From the NCBI RefSeq assembly GCF_039654945.1, contig NW_027361810.1, forward strand, positions 25,234,001-25,298,000: 64,000 bases of DNA, given 5' to 3'. A program made the position numbers and the translations under genes. The stretch comes from Dendrobates tinctorius (lineage: Eukaryota). The notes under the pieces are model-generated. The model was not told the origin of the DNA, did no database searches, and saw only the letters and a list, made by a program, of their open reading frames with translations. This document shows, one piece after another, positions 38,164 through 50,900 of this stretch. The first letter of the stretch is position 1; each line of letters begins with the position of its first letter.

Positions 38164-39062
38164 AACACCAAGGTTACTTACCGGTAGCCGGTTTTTCCAG
38201 CACTCATGACAACACACCTGAGAGAGGGATCCACCCAGCCAGGACACGAACCTACTGAAATAAAAGGACAGTATCTCTCCCCCCGCTTCAGTTGGTTACA
38301 GAGCATGAGAGGACCTCCCGGTTAATTACACATACAACCAACACCGCATCATAACACACCCAACTATAGTGCACACCCATATGGTGAGAAAATGGAGGTA
38401 ATATACGGGTGCTGTCAAGAGTTCTGGAAAAAAAACGGCTACTGGTAAGTAACCTCGGTGCTTTCCCTTCACCCGTGACAGCACACCTAAGAAACTTTTG
38501 GAGAATCTGAAACACCATAGGGAGGGACCACCCTACTACCAAAGGTCAAATCAGCAGAGGAGGATAGATCCAATCTAGTGTCTAAAGAAGGTGGATGGTG
38601 AGAACCAGGTAGTGGCCTTACAGATGTGGTTAATCAATACCTCCACTTTCTCAGTCCAGGAGGTCGCCACGGCTCGGGTGGAGTGACCCTTGATGTCATC
38701 AGGGATTGGAGCACCACTAGCAGAGTAAGCTTCACTAATGGCCTCCCGAATCCACCTGGCAATGGTACCCTTCGACACCCCATAACCCTTCCTACTACCC
38801 TGGAAGGTTATGAACTGGGACTGGGACTTCCTCCACCGTTTAATCACTGACATATATTCTAACATTGCCCTTCTAACGTCCCGATTATGAAACTTCCTCT
38901 CCCCCCCATTAAAGGTTACCGTCCGGTTTTCAGTACGAGAATTACATCAAGGACAGGAACCCAACTGAAGCGGGGGAGAGGTACCGCCCTTTTATTTCAG
39001 TAGATTCCTATCCTGGCTGGGTGGATCCCTCTCTCAGGTGGGCTGTCATGGGTGAAGGGAAA
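38164..39062 (-). mobile_element. Internally deleted DIRS1-like element (about 0.9 kb)
   Basis: Inverted terminal repeats, an internal complementary region (about 38407-38490), and a YR C-terminal remnant (ARWIREAI..GHSTRAVATSW..TFFRH). Confidence 0.88.
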
Positions 39063-41998: not shown

Positions 41999-44900
41999 CT
42001 AAACAAAGAGAAAAGGAGGAGAAGTGAACGGTAGAAAACGCGAGAGGCAGATTTCTACTTATATCCATCAATTCTACAGCTCCAAAAGCCTTCCCAGATA
42101 AGGGAGTCTGCCCGGATATTAGTACATATACCTTGCCATGCAAGGATCTAAGGAACAAGGGGTAACAAATCCTACTAAGCGTGGAATAGCAGGAGTGGTG
42201 GGTGATCCCCAAAACAGATGCAACCGAAGAGAAGAGAGAAATCAACCAGAACTTTCTTTAACTCTTGGAAAAAAACTTGCACCTTTCAGAAACCAAAAAC
42301 CCACTGATCCCATTTTTTTTCCTTTACAGTCCACGGCTGATTTGGAATATTGATGGAGACAATACCCTGAAGGGGACCCCTATAAAGAGCAACCCTAACT
42401 TTGGGGGGACATGCCAATGTACTGGCTGCACAGTGTGCCATCTAATATCCAGTGATGGCACATAACATTCATTAACTAGCCGGCTACCATCTTCCTTTGA
42501 GAAGCTCTATGTCAAAGGAGTTGCCTCAAAAAAAAAAAAAAAAAAAAAGGGTTATCCTAGGTGGATGCTATCCAAACTGAGGCTCTGCAACTCTTGGTCC
42601 ATTAACACATGCTGGGAGTTGTAGTTTCTAAACGGTGGGACAGCAAGAAGTTGGTCTAAGAGGATAATCTTTTTCCCCAGGGTCCTGGTGAATTACTTAT
42701 CACTATAGTTATGGGTATTCCTTGTACAATAAATGTATTACTGTCTACCCACTATATGGCTGATAACATTTTACACCCCAGTGGTCAGACCCCCACAACA
42801 GGGGACGCTGGACTATCACCGGTGAGAAGCTAGAGATGAGCATGCATCCTACCACTCTGATCAAAGTCTATGGGAGTTCTAGAAAGTTTGCCCATGATAT
42901 CGGCGATGATGACAGAAGAGGGATATCACCTCTCCGAATGGGCACAGATAGCAGTAGCCGGTGCCTACCTGTTACCAAACTTCTATATAAAAGAAAGATG
43001 CCCAATTCCTGGAACAGACTCTTACGTGTGTGTTTTACAAGTCAGGACAAATAATGGCCGTCCCTCACCCCTCTCCAGTGAGCGCACAGCAGGCCTGTAT
43101 GTGCCACTGGTGATCCTTTACTGACGTCAACTTCAAGAACTGGGAGATTTCGGCCACCGTCATGCACTCTTTCACATCTTGTTTATTTGCAAACACCAGC
43201 AGTCCGGCTTTCTTTAGGTCCTTCAATTAGCAAAAGAAGTAAAATCTATGATCATCTTTGTATCTTACCTTTTGCTAAGTAGCAATGTTTTTTTTTTTAT
43301 GCTAATCCAATGCAGACATTACACTTAAATGTCGTTCTTGTCGTGGCTGATGTTTCGCCTTTAGTCTAATCCTCTGTAAGCAAAACAGCTTGGATGCTAT
43401 AGATTAAAGAAGTTGTCCACTACTTTTTCAATGATGATCTATCCTGAGGATAGGTCATCAATGTCTGATTGGTCAGGGTCTGACACCCATAATTCCCACC
43501 GTTCAGCTGTTCTCAGTGTCAGTGGCCGCCGGCTGGTACTGCTCGATTACAGAGCTGCTCAGTCTTTTGATAGTGGCCGCGGCGGGTACTTCGCAGCCGC
43601 CTCCTATTCGGATCATCGGAGGACAAATGTGTAGCACCCATCAGAAAAACGGAGCAGTCCGCAACCAAACAGTTCTGTCCGGCTGCCGCCGCCGATCACA
43701 GGTGTTCGGTCAGGGGTTCCGGGTGACTGACATTGATGGAACTCACCTCATGAGATAACATCTTATAAAGCTCCTCTTTGGTCACCGAGATCCGCTCCCT
43801 ATCGGTGCTGTCCACCACCACTATCACAAACTGCAGGAAAAGAGAGGACACGTCAGAGGGGAGAGAAACAAGAACGATGCAAAATCCTGCACACAGAACC
43901 AATCACACATTCAATCCGTGGACACGACTGACGCAATTTTTCACGCACCTGTCTGTTTTCAATCACCCATCTATTTTGGACCTAGCCACCTTTTTGCCAT
44001 GGTGCATTAACAGGCAACCACCTGTGACGTACATTTACATTATGGTTCATAAAGGGGGTTAATGCCACCAGAAGAGATGGAGGAAAAGCTGTCTGCTGTA
44101 ATGGTATGGCTATACCTCTATACCTGCGAGGGGTGGTATTTTTTTTTTTTTTTTTTTTTAAACATCACACCTCGGTACCAATAATGCCAGATTATCAACA
44201 TTTTATTAAACATTTAAAAAAAAAAAAAAAAAAAAGCCAGATTACTTACCGGTAATGCTCTTTTAATGAGTCCACGACAGCACCCACTGGAGGTATCGGA
44301 TCCGCCCATTTGGAACAGGAAACCCTACAGGAAAGATAAAAGGGGCGGTCCGCCTTTCCTCCTCAGTTTTACGTTTCAGAGTACCAGAAGGACCGCCAAG
44401 GATTAGGCAATGTTCTCTTATTTTAACATCTTTCTTATCCATTATTTGGTTGATATACTTTAACTATTGATATCTTTAGGGAGGGAAGTGAGCGGGTGCT
44501 GTCGTGGACTCATTAAAAGAGCATTACCGGTAAGTAATCCGGCTTTTTACTCTTCGCCACGACAGCACCCACTGGAGAGATTCCAGAGACCATCACCTGG
44601 GTGGGACCACCGTGCCAAGGACAGTCCTGCCAAAGCTTAAGTCAGAGGTTGATGAAAGATCAAGTCTATAGTGGTTATAGAAGGTAGAAGGGGATGACCA
44701 AACTGCCGCCTTACATATAGTTTCAATCGGAACATCTCCCTTTTCCGCCCAAGAAGTTGCCATTGCCCTGGTGGAATGCGCCCTGATGTTCCCGGGAGGA
44801 TCTTCGTTTTTTGCGAAGTAGGCTAAACGAATGGCCTCTCTGATCCACCGGGAAATGGTGCTCTTCGTGACTCCATACCCCTTCTTACAGCCCTGAAATG

Positions 44901-47900
44901 AAACAAATAGGGCCCTACTCTGCCTCCAACTGTTGGACCTCTCAATATATTTTAGGACAGTTCTTTTGACGTCCAGAGTATGGAACTTCTGCTCTTCCGG
45001 AGTAGAGGGATTTTTATAGAAGGTTGGGAGGAGTATCTCCTGAGATCTATGGTATTTTGTTGCCACTTTTGGCAGGTAGGCAGGGTCTTGTTTTAATACC
45101 AATCTGTCTTGGTATTCTTGAAAAAAAGGTGGATCTATTGACAAGGCCTGGATATCACCCACTCTTCTAGCTGAGGTCAGTGCTACCAAGAGGGCCATTT
45201 TAAGTGCTAAGTATTTGAAGGGTATTGTGTCGATCGGCTCAAAGGGGTCTACCGTTAGGGCGTCTAAGACCAGATTTAGATCCCATGTAGGGACGGAGGG
45301 TATGTGGATTGGAGCTATTCGTTCACATGCTGTAATGAATCGAGTTATCCACTTGTTGCCTGCTATATTATGGCCATATAGTGCTCCTAATGCCGATATT
45401 TGTACTCTTAGCGTATTTACTGCTAAGCCTAAGTCTTTCCCTTTCTGCAGAAATTCCAAGATTGGGATTATCGGAATTTCTGCTGTATGAGGTACTGTAT
45501 GGAATTGAAGAAATTTTTTCCATATTCTAGTGTAAATTTGGGTTGTGGACTGTTTTCTACTTTGTAGTAGTGTAGTAATTAAAGACTCAGAGAATCCTCT
45601 TGTCCTCAATAACTGCCTCTCAAATTCCACGCCGTCAAGTGCAAGCTGACCACTTGAGGGTGGAAAAAGGGGCCTTGGGAGAGTAGGTTGGGAGTCGAAG
45701 GAAGGACCCAAGGATCTGTTATTGACATAATTTGCAGCCACGAAAACCACGGTCTTTTTGGCCAGAACGGTGCTATTAAGATTATCCTTGCTTTGTCGTC
45801 TCTGATCTTCCGAATTACTTGAGGTAGGAGGATCAATGGAGGGAACGCATACGCCAGGTTGAAATTCCATGGAGCTAGAAGGGCGTCTAGTATGTCTGGG
45901 TGATCTGATGGAGATAGGGAGGCAAATGTTTTTATCTGCCTGTTCTCCTTTGTGGCGAAAAGGTCCACCTCGGGTTGTCCCCATAGGGCTACTATGTCCC
46001 TGAAGACCTTCTGATTGAGGCACCACTCTCCTTGCCGTAGAGTGTGTCGGCTTAGGAAGTCTGCCTTTTGATTGCTCTCGCCTCTGATATGAAGGGCCGA
46101 GAGGGACAAAAAATAGTTTTCTGCTAAGTTTAAAATTCTTGCCGCTGAAGACATCAGAGTCTCTGATCGAGTTCCTCCTTGTCTGTTTATATAGGCCACT
46201 GTGGTGGTGTTGTCCGATAGGATCCTGACATGCTTCTGTTGGAGCTGCGGAAGGAAGTTGTATAAAGCATAGAACACTGCAGTCAGTTCTTTTAAATTGG
46301 ATGAGTACTCGCATTCCTCTCTATTCCACCTTCCCTGATGAAACCCATTCTCCATGTGGGCTCCCCAGCCCTGGGGACTGGCATCGGTGGTTACGATACA
46401 GGATGGAACTATAACCCATGGAACTCCTGAACATAAATGGTCATCATCTAACCACCACTCTAGAGAAGTCAAGACTTCTTGTGACAGGGTTATTTTGCTC
46501 TGTAAATGACCACTATGTCGCTTATCCTCTTGGAGGATCTGGTGTTGTAGTGTACGGACATGGTACTGGGCCCACCGGACTGCCGGGGTGCAAGAATTTA
46601 GTGATCCTAATAGTGACATTGCTCCTCTCAAGGACACCCGTGGTCTATCTATAGCTGCTCGTATTTTTTGTTTCATGAGGGTGATTTTTACCTGAGGTAG
46701 TAGACATCTCTGGGTCAAGGAATCTAGTTGAAATCCTAGAAATGTCTGGAGAGATTGTGGATCGAGTCTGGACTTTTGGATATTGATGATCCAGCCAAGG
46801 CTCTGAAAAGAGGAGATTGTGTCAGTCACGCGTTCGGTACATTGTTTGACTGAATTCCCAATTATTAGGAAGTCGTCTAAATACGGCACGATCAGTGTGT
46901 CCTTTTGGCGAAGGTAGGCCATTACTTCTGCCATCACCTTGGTAAATATTCTTGGTGCCGTGGAAAGCCCGAAGGGCATGGCCGCGTATTGGAAATGACG
47001 AATCCTGCCCTCGACTTCCACTGCGACTCTTAGGTATTTCTGGAATCTATTGTGAATAGGGAGATGATAATAAGCATCTTTTAAATCAATCCCTGCCATT
47101 ACGCAATTTGGGAAAAGAAGCTTTATAGTGGATCTAATTGATTCCATTTTGAAGTTATAATTTTTTATAAATGAATTAAGCTTCTTTAAATTAATAATGG
47201 TTCTAAACGTACCGTCTGGTTTAGGCACCAAAAACAGGGGAGAGTAAAAACCTCTACCCTGTTGTTCCTCAGGGACGTCAACTAAAACATTTTTAGCTAG
47301 TAGGACTCGAATCTCGTCTTCGAGAGCCTTTTGCTGAACTGAGGAATTAAGGCGAGTTATAACAAAGAATTCATAAGGGATCTGAAGGAATTCAATCTTT
47401 ATTCCTTCTTTGATTATGTTCAAAATCCATGGGCTTAACGTAATTTGTTCCCATTTGGTAACAAAAAATTTTAATCTACCCCCAACTGGTGGGTTTAAAC
47501 TCTTAATTTTTATCTCTCCTATATGTTGGCCCTCTGAAGATGGTACCCTTCTGCTTTTCGTCTTTCGTGGCCCATCTATTCGTTCTGTCCGACTGTCTTC
47601 TTCTCCCGAATGGCCGTCTCTTAAAGGTTTTCCTATAAAACGGAATGGGAGAATCACTGAAGGCCTTTTTCCTCTCTTTTGCCTTGGCGAGAATTTCGTC
47701 TAAGGCTTTCCCGAAGAGGAACTCACCCTCGCATGGGGTTGCACTAATTTTGGATTTTGATTGTGCGTCCCCTTTCCAGCTTTTTATCCACAGCGCGCGT
47801 CTGGCGTTATTCACCAGGGCTGCCGACCTCGCTGCCAGTCTTAGGGTGTCCGCTGAAGCATCTGCCATAAAGGCAGCTGCACCTCTTATCAACAGGATGG

Positions 47901-50900
47901 CTGCACGCAGTTTCTCCCTTGACACTCTTTGCTCGATCTGCTGGTCTAATTGATCTAGCCATACCAGCATTGATCTAGCAGTACATGTGCTGGCTATTGC
48001 AGGTTTGAATACCCCGGTGGTGGACTCCCAGGACCTTTTGAGCGAAGATTCTGCCTTTCGGTCTAATGGGTCTGCTAACAATCCTGCGTCCTCGACCGGG
48101 AACGAGGTCTGTTTGGAAGTGGAGGCTATGACGGCATCCACCTTTGGTATTTTAGTCCATTTCAATAGGTCTTCATCAGTGAACGGATACTTCCGTTTTG
48201 AGGCTGATGGGAGAAAACCCCTCTGGTCGTGTTTTTCCCACTCTCTTTTGATGAGGTCCTTAATTGCCGGTATCACCGGAAATGATCTCCTCTTTTTCTG
48301 CCAATCCCGCAAACATAATGTCCTGCGCGGTTTGGGCTCCCCTTTCCTCTTCACACCCCATAGTATTTCTAACCGCTTTTACTAGGTTATCTACGCTGTC
48401 CAGTGGAAAACATGCGCGTCCTTCCATCTCCGAGGATGACGATGAGGACGTGAATGCGGAGCCTGAATTTAACTCCTGTTCTTCCTCTGTCTCTGAACTA
48501 ACAACGACCTGTTTCTTATGACTGGACTCTGAGGGAGTGCTGGCGCGGTTGATGGCTTGTATCTCCTCCCTAATTATGGCTCGGATATCTTTAGAAGATA
48601 TCGTCGACCCCTGCCTGGTTTCTTTCATGCATTGTTTGCAGAGTTTTTTGGGGTAGGAGTCAGGGAGAGGCTCTGAACATAATGCGCATTCTTTATGTTT
48701 AGCTTTTTCTTTTTTCTTTGACTGAAGTGGGAGGTCAAAGGTAAAGAGAGGGGGGGGGTTAGCTTAATAGGTAGAGTATATACTTTGCACACTCACCCAG
48801 TGAAGCTTAATACCGGGTCGGATGGCTGAGACGGTCTGGATCTGGTTTCTGCTGCCTCGCTCCTGCGGGCAGTCTCTGTCCTGGCGCTGCGGTCCCTGGT
48901 GGAATTGCCCCCAGCTGAATCCCCTGCTGGGGCCTGCGACTCCGTGGGGGACGACATGGTTCCATCGTTGCAGCTCTGTTTTATCTTCACTCCTGTCGTG
49001 CCCCCGGAAGTCGCCCTGTGTCAGCCCCGAGGAGACCGCACAGGCGGATGCATGGCCCAGGTAAGATCCTGCAGGATCCTGCTCCATTTGGAACAGGAAA
49101 CCAAAAACTGAGGAGGAAAGGCGGACCGCCCCTTTTATCTTTCCTGTAGGGTTTCCTGTTCCAAATGGGCGGATCCGATACCTCCAGTGGGTGCTGTCGT
49201 GGCGAAGAGTAAAAAAAAAAAAGATGGCATTTCAATAGGACTTTATATTCTGAGGAGGTCCGACTGTGCGCTCTGCACAACAGACTGGTAGTTAACACCT
49301 AGCTGCATGTTAGTTCTTACGACTGTAGAAAAAAAAAAAAAAAAAAAAAAAATTTAATACGCACAAAATACGAAGACATGATGATCATTTTATGAGTTGT
49401 TTTGTCTCCATATAGTTTGTATCGACCTGTATGAACAGAGCAAAGAATTCGATCGGCCCTCTTTTATGGGTGGATACTGGCCTAAATACATTTATTCATA
49501 TAGAAGCATTCCATAAATAATTGGACATCATATCACAGCCGTAGAAGTATGGAGAGATGTCATTTTTTCTTGCTGAGGACACAATCTTACCTCTGTGTTG
49601 GTATAATACGTATTCCACGACGAGCGGAGGGATTCCTGACCGCCGATGTCCCACATAAGAAACCTTGTATTGTTGACCACTATCTCCTCCACGTTGCTGC
49701 CTATGGTCGGAGACGTGTGAACTACTTCATTCATGGAACTGAAAAAAGAAAAGAGACTGATCGATACATTGCTCACAACGATCTGAATGATAAGGCGCGA
49801 GCTCCGTCGCAAATCACGCGACAAACCTAATTGGAGAACGTCGAGGCCCAAGGAAACCCCAACCCCGACGTACCATAAAAACTACACTTAATATTTATAA
49901 CATTATTCAGCATAAAAACCCTCAGTCAATTCTACTATTCATCCAACGTCGTAAAATCAAAGACCAAAACACAATGGGATGGTTGAACTGGATTTTTTTT
50001 TCCCCACCATATCACTCCAATTGGAATGTTTTCCCCCCCAAGTTCAGTACATTATACGGTAAAAATGACCGTTGTACGCCCGGAAATCCACATGAGGATG
50101 TCACCAATTGGGGACAATTCTCAGCTTTCCTTATGGAATAGAAGGAAGGACGAACCATGAAGCTTAGTCGCAGATCGTCGTTGGATTTCATTGCAAATTT
50201 TGCTCTGCATTTGGGAAGGTAAAATCCGCAGTGAATAACCCCGGCATACACAGACGACAAATGCTCGGCGCTGCTTAATTTACGCTGCGGGTTGTCTCTG
50301 CAGCGTGTGCATTCGATTTGATAAAATGGTGCCTACAATACTGGTACTGGAAAATCCGAACAAAAAAGCCGCTTCATATCCCACTGGGTGTGAACATTCC
50401 TTAAAGGTATATTCTGAATTTACTACCTGGAGAACAGTAAAATAAAAAGCAGCGAGCACCCAGTGAACAGGACATCGATATCGCCAGAAGACACAGGTAC
50501 TTACAACTGATACAGTATGGTCGTCTTCCCCGCGTTATCCAGGCCCACAATTATAACCTTGTGCTCTGAAATATAGAAATAAAATAGATACAAATCATTA
50601 CATCCATATATGAAGATAGTGGTTGGAAAGACCAACACTTTTACAATTTACCGTTTAGTAAAATTTTGCAGTCGTTCATGAGATACTAACATTTTTATTT
50701 TGTTTACAGCTCGTTACCTAGGTGACCGACCACTGATGTTGTCCGGCTTGTTAGCACTGCCTTTAATCTTACAAGCTCCATAGAAAAGATAGGCACGTGT
50801 TCTGCTGTCTAGCAGCGATGGTCGGTCACCAAGGCAACGAGCGGTAAACAAGAGAAAAGAGTTTAGATCTCAAGAATGGCTGAAAATTTTAACAAGCCGT

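Follow-up and report, generated by a model that had tools for sequence, protein, structure and literature searches.

How does a retrotransposon make its first protein when the gene for that protein has no start codon ahead of its zinc knuckle? This question is raised by a DIRS1-like tyrosine-recombinase (YR) retrotransposon that occupies positions 44231-49215 of a 64,000-nucleotide (nt) stretch of DNA from Dendrobates tinctorius (NCBI RefSeq assembly GCF_039654945.1, contig NW_027361810.1, positions 25,234,001 to 25,298,000). The whole stretch, at its full length, is called the window here; coordinates are those of the window, and the element and all features described below lie on its minus strand. 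In the gag frame there is no ATG between a TAA stop codon (48766-64) and the CxxC knuckle, and the first ATG, at 48628, lies past the knuckle. An earlier note on this DNA, made from the sequence, proposed that gag is interrupted by a spliceosomal intron and that two ATG/donor pairs, the first joining ATG 49087 to a strong GTGAGT donor, could supply two alternative Gag N-termini. Comparison with related elements indicates that the gag intron is real and very probably functional. The same comparison reverses the ranking of the two donors: judged by sequence conservation, it is the weak pair (ATG 48957 and CCG|GTATTA) that is the conserved Gag start.

Every coordinate and signal given earlier for the gag head was correct when the minus strand was read again. 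The 3' splice site has the textbook form described for it and opens in phase 0 onto zinc-knuckle gag. It consists of a branch-site-like GCTAAC (48758-48763; putative branch A at 48759, 37 nt from the AG), for which CTAAC, CTGAC or CTGAT equivalents are aligned in relatives, followed by a pyrimidine tract and acceptor A1, ...ccacttcag| (48722-48757; tract to 48724, AG at 48723-48722). Exon 2 begins at 48721 with TCA AAG AAA and encodes ...LCKQC. The two ATG/donor pairs upstream both join exon 2 in phase 0 and re-read as stated, together with the stops that close both frames in unspliced RNA. In frame B, ATG 48957 (context accATGt) opens a leader exon of 144 nt (48 codons, MSSP...SDP; 48814-48957) that ends in phase 0 at donor D1, CCG|GTATTA (48808-48816), a weak donor matching the consensus at five of nine positions. 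The GT lies at 48813-12, giving a GT..AG intron 1 of 92 nt in phase 0 (48722-48813). In frame A, ATG 49087 (49085-49087) opens 291 nt (97 codons) that end at 48797 at donor D2, TGG|GTGAGT (48791-48799), a strong donor 17 nt inside intron 1 whose GT (48796-95) would define an intron of 75 nt. Without splicing, frame A is closed by TAA 48766-64 and frame B by TGA 48796-94, so that read-through past D1 in the leader frame meets a stop after six more codons. The features of a U2-type intron are all present (GT at 48813-12, CTAAC at 48762-58, the tract, AG at 48723-22); its removal restores the frame and its retention breaks it.

The intron was followed through nine loci representing about seven families (the window, L001, L002, L003, L004, L013, L012, L005-7 and L011), taken from Ranitomeya, Dendrobates, Engystomops and one unidentified run. 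The NCBI gene ranges of the relatives are longer than their coding sequences by 85-102 nt, and the intron was placed by exact reconstruction. A GT..AG intron in phase 0 is found at the homologous position in all nine loci, with lengths of 85-102 nt: 102 nt in L001, 87 nt in L004 and 86 nt in L013 (all R. variabilis, the last from a 20-member cluster), 85 nt in both L002 and L003 (R. imitator), 96 nt in L012 (D. tinctorius, the family closest to the window element), 86 nt in L005-7 (three identical Engystomops copies) and 94 nt in L011 (an unspliced Logan contig, species unknown). The zinc knuckle begins at exon-2 residue 12, 11 codons after the junction, in all eight dendrobatid loci including the window; in Engystomops 25 codons separate the junction from the knuckle. 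Alignment A1 (the window and four Ranitomeya loci) shows no variation in CCG|GTA, and in it a block around the branch region is partly conserved, best in the window, L001 and L002. The gag frame lacks an ATG before the knuckle in eight of the nine loci, and reading through the intron produces stops or a frameshift in all six loci that were translated through it. With the same position, phase and signals kept in nine loci, the proposal of a spliceosomal-type intron at the gag head is supported, and so is the claim that Gag requires splicing.

The leader that precedes the intron is conserved as well. The N-termini of the related proteins P0002, P0003 and P0001 align with frame B (MSSP..., Ser/Arg-rich, ...SDP) and continue into the lysine-rich run and the CxxC motif. 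Between the window and L012, the ratio of nonsynonymous to synonymous differences (pN/pS) is 0.20 in the leader and 0.15 in exon 2, at pS of 0.55-0.72. Because of these ratios, the leader is regarded as coding, in frame B, and under purifying selection, and the pair formed by ATG 48957 and the weak donor is, judged by conservation, beyond chance. In L001, L012 and L013 the leader ATG is preceded, at a distance of 37-40 nt, by a TATA-like box in a segment that the window lacks; this gives a hint that transcription starts downstream of ATG 49087.

A second intron is predicted to link gag to pol. Intron 2 (47633-47726; 94 nt, phase 1) runs from donor D3, GAGG|GTGAGT, to acceptor A2, ttttatag|GA; the upstream exon ends at 47727, the next exon starts at 47632, and once the intron is removed Gag reads on into the pol frame. 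Five of five dendrobatid families retain the donor and the acceptor with the best pyrimidine tract, and with them the phase and a length of 94 or 97 nt. The D3^A2 junction was mapped in models P0023 and P0010 and is also apparent from the sequences of P0004, P0007, P0024 and P0017. The Pol open reading frame (ORF) has no ATG of its own before the reverse transcriptase (RT) domain. The conserved in-frame donor in the 3' part of gag and the acceptor before pol are what a Gag-Pol fusion by splicing calls for, and Gag-Pol is probably made through removal of intron 2. Ranitomeya models (L008, L009, L010) remove further pieces of open pol, of 498, 123 and 447 nt, the second of which contains the YLDD motif. 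Their counterparts in the window, at 47547/47046, 46925/46802 and 46691/46244, have matching GT and AG dinucleotides. L002 and L004 lack some of these internal pol sites. The pol exons so defined lead, in the L001 family, from the leader into the frame of ORF3, which encodes the recombinase.

The strong donor requires an explanation of its own. In the window and in the L012, L001, L002/L013, L004 and L011 families, a conserved GG|GTGAGT follows D1 at a distance of 17-31 nt; the donor is lost in L003 and the block is absent from Engystomops. Region-wise pairwise identity is too blunt for intronic constraint, and comparison at the level of motifs and between the window and L012 was used instead. 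A block of 34 nt around D2 is identical between the window and L012 (34/34), while synonymous sites differ by 55-72%. D2 lies in the 5' strand of a conserved intronic hairpin (48762-48807) whose 3' strand ends just before the branch site. The predicted stability is -16.1 kcal/mol (z = -2.8). Across 11 sequences, pairing reaches 89% of cells and falls to 24-47% if the partner is shifted along; three pairs are altered on both sides, and the observed covariation score is unmatched by any shuffle.

Three R. imitator models (P0021, P0022 and P0025) join D2 to an acceptor just before pol, skipping the whole of gag (1408 nt). The phase of D2 relative to the leader is 2 in the window, L012, L002 and L013 but 1 in the L001 family, and the leader frame of L004 and L011 meets a stop within the spacer before D2 is reached. 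Because the phase varies among families, no single protein fusion accounts for the conservation of D2. Two fixed coding roles were tried and rejected. A splice from D2 to the pol acceptor would read the gag tail in the window and L002 (phase 2) and would meet the spacer stop in L004 and L011; the L001 family (phase 1) is the only one in which it enters the pol frame. A route from the leader into ORF3 would use D2-A2 and then D4 to the acceptor at 46244 in the window; the path in L001 is different, and sites are missing in L002 and L004. The preferred reading is that D2 is a conserved structured element with a role at the level of RNA and not a second Gag donor.

Annotated junctions come from gene models of related frogs. 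The contigs of four runs aligned with the window show no splice joints, the kind of run being unrecorded and probably DNA; they carry intron 1 unspliced, with donors, branch site, AG and TAA unchanged. Five differences in the tract of another copy are all pyrimidine-to-pyrimidine on the minus strand. Since genomic copies keep the intron, the RNA that is copied must be unspliced, which supports the earlier proposal that the genome is copied from unspliced RNA. A search with the N-terminal region of P0002 for spliced proteins derived from complementary DNA returned NCBI models only and no transcriptome contigs. NCBI gene models in relatives annotate the intron 1 junction, and Gnomon models place introns within pol ORFs that are fully open in three loci. 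An ORF-driven predictor has no reason to cut introns from an open pol ORF, and the annotated junctions of the relatives are therefore likely to be backed by transcripts. For the window element in D. tinctorius, we infer both the splicing and the form of RNA that is packaged.

Taken together, the data favor the following scheme, to which we assign a probability of roughly 0.7. The first gene of the element would be split by a genuine U2-type intron. Translation would start at ATG 48957 and produce a 48-residue leader rich in Ser, Arg, Thr and Pro, and the splice from 48814|48813 to 48722|48721 would join this leader in phase 0 to the LAP2alpha-like Gag, which carries the lysine-rich run and the zinc knuckle. 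Unspliced RNA would yield a 54-codon peptide only, with no Gag start, and would be the form that is reverse transcribed, given that the intron is present in all genomic copies seen. Most likely, the strong GTGAGT is masked by the hairpin, which also brings the weak donor near the branch point, an effect that would tune the fraction of RNA that is spliced. When exposed, GTGAGT could act as an alternative donor from which gag is skipped, as in the R. imitator annotation, and removal of intron 2 (47726-47633) would turn Gag into Gag-Pol.

Several points weigh against this scheme. The case for splicing of intron 1 in the window genome is a comparative one, built on sequence. The weak D1, with consensus bases at five of nine positions, has to compete with a stronger donor that is nearer the acceptor; should D2 prevail, the bulk of the spliced RNA would carry no Gag frame opened at ATG 48957. 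In L011 an ATG (positions 378-380) stands exactly at the second donor (ATG|GTGAGT), with the remaining 63 nt of the intron open and in frame, and Gag of this locus could start there without splicing. Finally, the hairpin was derived from the same sequences on which it was tested, its stems are mostly invariant, and the covariation is thin at three pairs.

The alternative that survives best assigns the GTGAGT block mainly to the marking of genomic RNA: the hairpin would be a signal, present only in unspliced RNA, for packaging, dimerisation or priming. The hairpin lies entirely within intron 1, and the block is the most conserved non-coding stretch of the element. Its conservation exceeds what pairing with U1 would need, as it extends to the upstream TCAC and to the partner strand of the stem, and its placement resembles that of retroviral packaging signals downstream of the major donor. 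L003 lacks the donor dinucleotide, however, and Engystomops lacks the block altogether, so that the block is not universal. It also serves as a donor in three R. imitator models. Marking of the genome as the main role of the block is doubtful, though it would be compatible with the splicing scheme and is not exclusive of it.

A second alternative holds that splicing of these transposon RNAs is cryptic or imposed by the host and stands outside the expression plan of the element itself. Such splicing would look destructive, and some of what is annotated does: the NCBI models cut in-frame pieces from an intact RT, including YLDD, and from other parts of pol, and not all of the internal pol sites are retained in L002 and L004. 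Cryptic splicing is difficult to reconcile with the dependence of the element on intron 1, there being no Gag ATG in eight of nine loci. Nor does it explain why the leader is under purifying selection and stops precisely at the donor, why change in the intronic block is so much slower than at synonymous sites, or why the donor, acceptor, length and phase of intron 2 are kept in five families. Cryptic or host-imposed splicing is therefore unlikely to explain intron 1, which is better read as part of the expression scheme of the element.

The proposal of two Gag N-termini, in which both donors are used with their own ATGs as alternative 5' splice sites (97 residues from frame A, 48 from frame B), has fared worse. 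It drew on the fact that both pairs are in frame in the window. An in-frame ATG-ORF leading to donor 2 also exists in the L001 family and in L011, and an open frame of 145 codons is uncommon, occurring in 3-9% of shuffles; likewise, an ATG-ORF of at least 97 codons that reaches the donor appears in 3-9% of dinucleotide shuffles. Among relatives, however, the frame that leads from donor 2 toward gag is closed in L002, L004 and L012, where it has 8, 5 and 8 open codons, respectively, and no ATG; in L012, the closest family, the spacing from the second donor is 76 nt. A pair of the ATG 49087 type is in frame in only three of the six families that have the second donor. Even within the L001 family the ORF differs in start and length among three copies (129, 53 and 79 codons). 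Frame A peptides are unrelated between families, whereas the frame B leaders are homologous.

Variation among copies points in the same direction. In frame A the copy variants comprise one synonymous and five replacement changes; four of these variants fall within frame B, where two are synonymous and two conservative. A 2-nt deletion at 48988 is present in some copies. None of the contigs from the four runs crosses 49025; contigs halt there from both sides (49024-49026) and continue into unlike sequence. Because no contig spans this point, the link between the ITR side and the leader side (49087 to 48957; ITR, inverted terminal repeat) is peculiar to the window copy and is not the common form of the family. 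The check on copies and relatives therefore gave a divided answer to the earlier note: donors, branch site, AG and frame B are kept, and frame A is not. Its ranking of ATG 49087 and GTGAGT above the weaker pair does not stand. That pairing appears to be a copy-specific coincidence, and the 97-codon reading frame a chance ORF. The idea that the two pairs give two N-termini, the ATG 49087 pair not being kept in frame, is largely refuted by the comparison and must be considered very improbable.

Finally, it is hardly credible that there is no functional intron at all and that the window holds a decayed copy of an element whose consensus reads from an upstream ATG straight into gag: frame A and the gag frame are identical, the only stop in the intervening 75 nt is TAA 48766-64, which would have to be a private nonsense mutation, and the window copy does have a private gag frameshift, but the TAA and the full set of signals are intact in contigs from other copies and individuals, the TAA lies within a block conserved across families, the segment has a length not divisible by three or up to three stops in eight other loci, and it is retained in the three identical Engystomops copies and the 20-member R. 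variabilis cluster.

The remaining anatomy of the element is that of a slightly damaged DIRS1-like retrotransposon. The 5' ITR (49097-49202) pairs with the 3' ITR (44272-44377) through arms of 106 nt that are 98% complementary; blastn of the element against the window is further evidence for this repeat. An inverted-repeat search (I1, I2, I3, of which I1 is the 106-nt, 98% pair) places the 3' ITR together with an internal complementary region and terminal repeats in 44231-44577; I2 and I3 connect 44231-44288, 44491-44577 and 49182-49215. ITRs and an internal complementary region of this kind characterize DIRS1-like YR elements. Translation and alignment of homologues place the first part of gag exon 2, with the lysine-rich run and the CxxC...CxxC knuckle, at 48263-48721. 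The remainder of gag, in a shifted frame, encodes the LAP2alpha-like domain (47506-48354; PF11560, E = 8.6e-18) and is 79-86% identical to dendrobatid proteins. At 79-86% identity, the best protein relatives of the element come from three frogs, Ranitomeya variabilis, R. imitator and Dendrobates tinctorius, and are all NCBI models. The gag frame of the window copy is broken near 48292-48296, where contigs from other copies show a short indel.

By translation and Pfam, the Pol ORF (45606-47657) comprises an RT (RVT_1, 1e-20), an RNase H (RT_RNaseH, 3e-6) and a methyltransferase-like tail. ORF3 (44593-46314), which overlaps pol, encodes the tyrosine recombinase; its matches to Phage_integrase (E = 2e-4) and to a SAM-like domain (E = 4e-4) are both below the Pfam cut-offs, and the HxxR and Y motifs of the recombinase were spotted by eye in the translation. 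No integrase or protease family was matched by Pfam in the element, and the combination of RT/RNase H with a tyrosine recombinase in place of a DDE integrase and protease is that of DIRS1-like elements. Rfam gave sub-threshold microRNA-like matches only, on the ITR hairpin.

Several observations concern the ends and surroundings of the element. The ITR sequence (49100-49215) has a contig depth 5-30 times that of the element interior in all four runs, which suggests many solo or shared ITR copies. GTRAGT hexamers occur three times on the sense strand of the element: at D2, at D3 and near 44249. The last belongs to a perfect donor-like CCG|GTAAGT (44244-44252, GT at 44249) in the right-end segment that is mirrored by the internal complementary region. 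A weak tyrosine-recombinase-like remnant lies at 38576-38905, with 37% identity over 110 residues to the recombinase of the element. Just upstream of the element, on the same strand, lies an exon of an Arf-family GTPase (49591-49734; Pfam Arf, 4.7e-16), and the acceptors of the element could trap splicing of this host exon.

To our knowledge, almost nothing is known of how the overlapping ORFs of DIRS elements are expressed, except in Dictyostelium. An intron at the gag head that must be removed would, if true, have consequences beyond this element. With Gag made only from spliced RNA and copying done from unspliced RNA, translation and copying would use different forms of RNA, and the translated and the copied RNA would be physically distinct molecules. 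This would be a clean answer to the conflict between translation and packaging, which retroviruses and long terminal repeat elements solve otherwise, and a Gag-Pol made by splicing would offer another route than frameshifting. Frog RNA-seq data that already exist would allow a direct count of the junctions, which are specific enough for this.

In its parts, the window element resembles the DIRS1-like elements described from vertebrates, such as those of Xenopus, which have ITRs and an internal complementary region, a LAP2alpha-like gag, a pol with RT, RNase H and a methyltransferase-like tail, and an overlapping YR ORF (PMC9210276, PMC3266345). Overviews of DIRS elements and the Xenopus study present three plain ORFs, and these sources make no mention of introns or splicing (PMC9210276, PMC3266345). 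The window element differs from these descriptions in that its gag is split by a conserved intron and its Gag-Pol needs a second one.

DIRS gag sequences are also found as exons of two host genes, TMPO (LAP2alpha) and ZNF451, which are not active elements. Abascal et al. inferred that the DIRS sequence ancestral to LAP2alpha and to a ZNF451 isoform carried its own acceptor. Acceptor A1, upstream of gag, is a natural candidate for this acceptor. A native acceptor before gag would explain in concrete terms how DIRS gag came to be exapted more than once as an alternatively spliced host exon, and also how host transcripts could be trapped by intronic elements in sense orientation, the orientation that the window element has.

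Splicing is tied to Gag output in some plant retrotransposons. In the Ty1/copia elements EVD of Arabidopsis and BARE of barley, alternative splicing sets the output of Gag and separates translated from copied RNA, and in EVD the U1 small nuclear ribonucleoprotein at the donor also governs the fate of unspliced RNA (PMC5580714, PMC3735527). The window element is like EVD and BARE in that splicing would be tied both to Gag output and to the split between translated and copied RNA. It is unlike them in that their unspliced RNA also encodes Gag and splicing removes downstream pol, whereas the window element has no Gag start without splicing. Its intron also lies at the extreme 5' end of gag, and in an animal YR (DIRS) element.

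Retroviruses have a 5'-proximal major donor, use unspliced RNA as the genome and carry signals that mark the genome downstream of the donor. The comparison drawn here follows established retrovirology (PMC5035971). Like retroviruses, the window element would combine a donor region near the 5' end, unspliced RNA as the genome and a conserved structure found only in the unspliced form, and suboptimal splice signals would be expected to balance the RNA forms in both. The polarity is reversed, since Gag would come from spliced RNA here and comes from unspliced RNA there, and Gag-Pol would arise through splicing and not through frameshifting or readthrough. A wider interpretation, offered only tentatively, is that DIRS elements of frogs run a retrovirus-like splicing programme of reversed polarity. 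Gag would be made through the weak donor only and Gag-Pol by splicing, and a strong decoy or alternative donor, locked in a hairpin, would set the ratio of spliced to unspliced RNA, perhaps also marking the genome for packaging and routing the leader to downstream ORFs. The gag acceptor of such elements may have enabled the two mammalian captures, LAP2alpha and ZNF451, in which DIRS gag became an alternative terminal exon.

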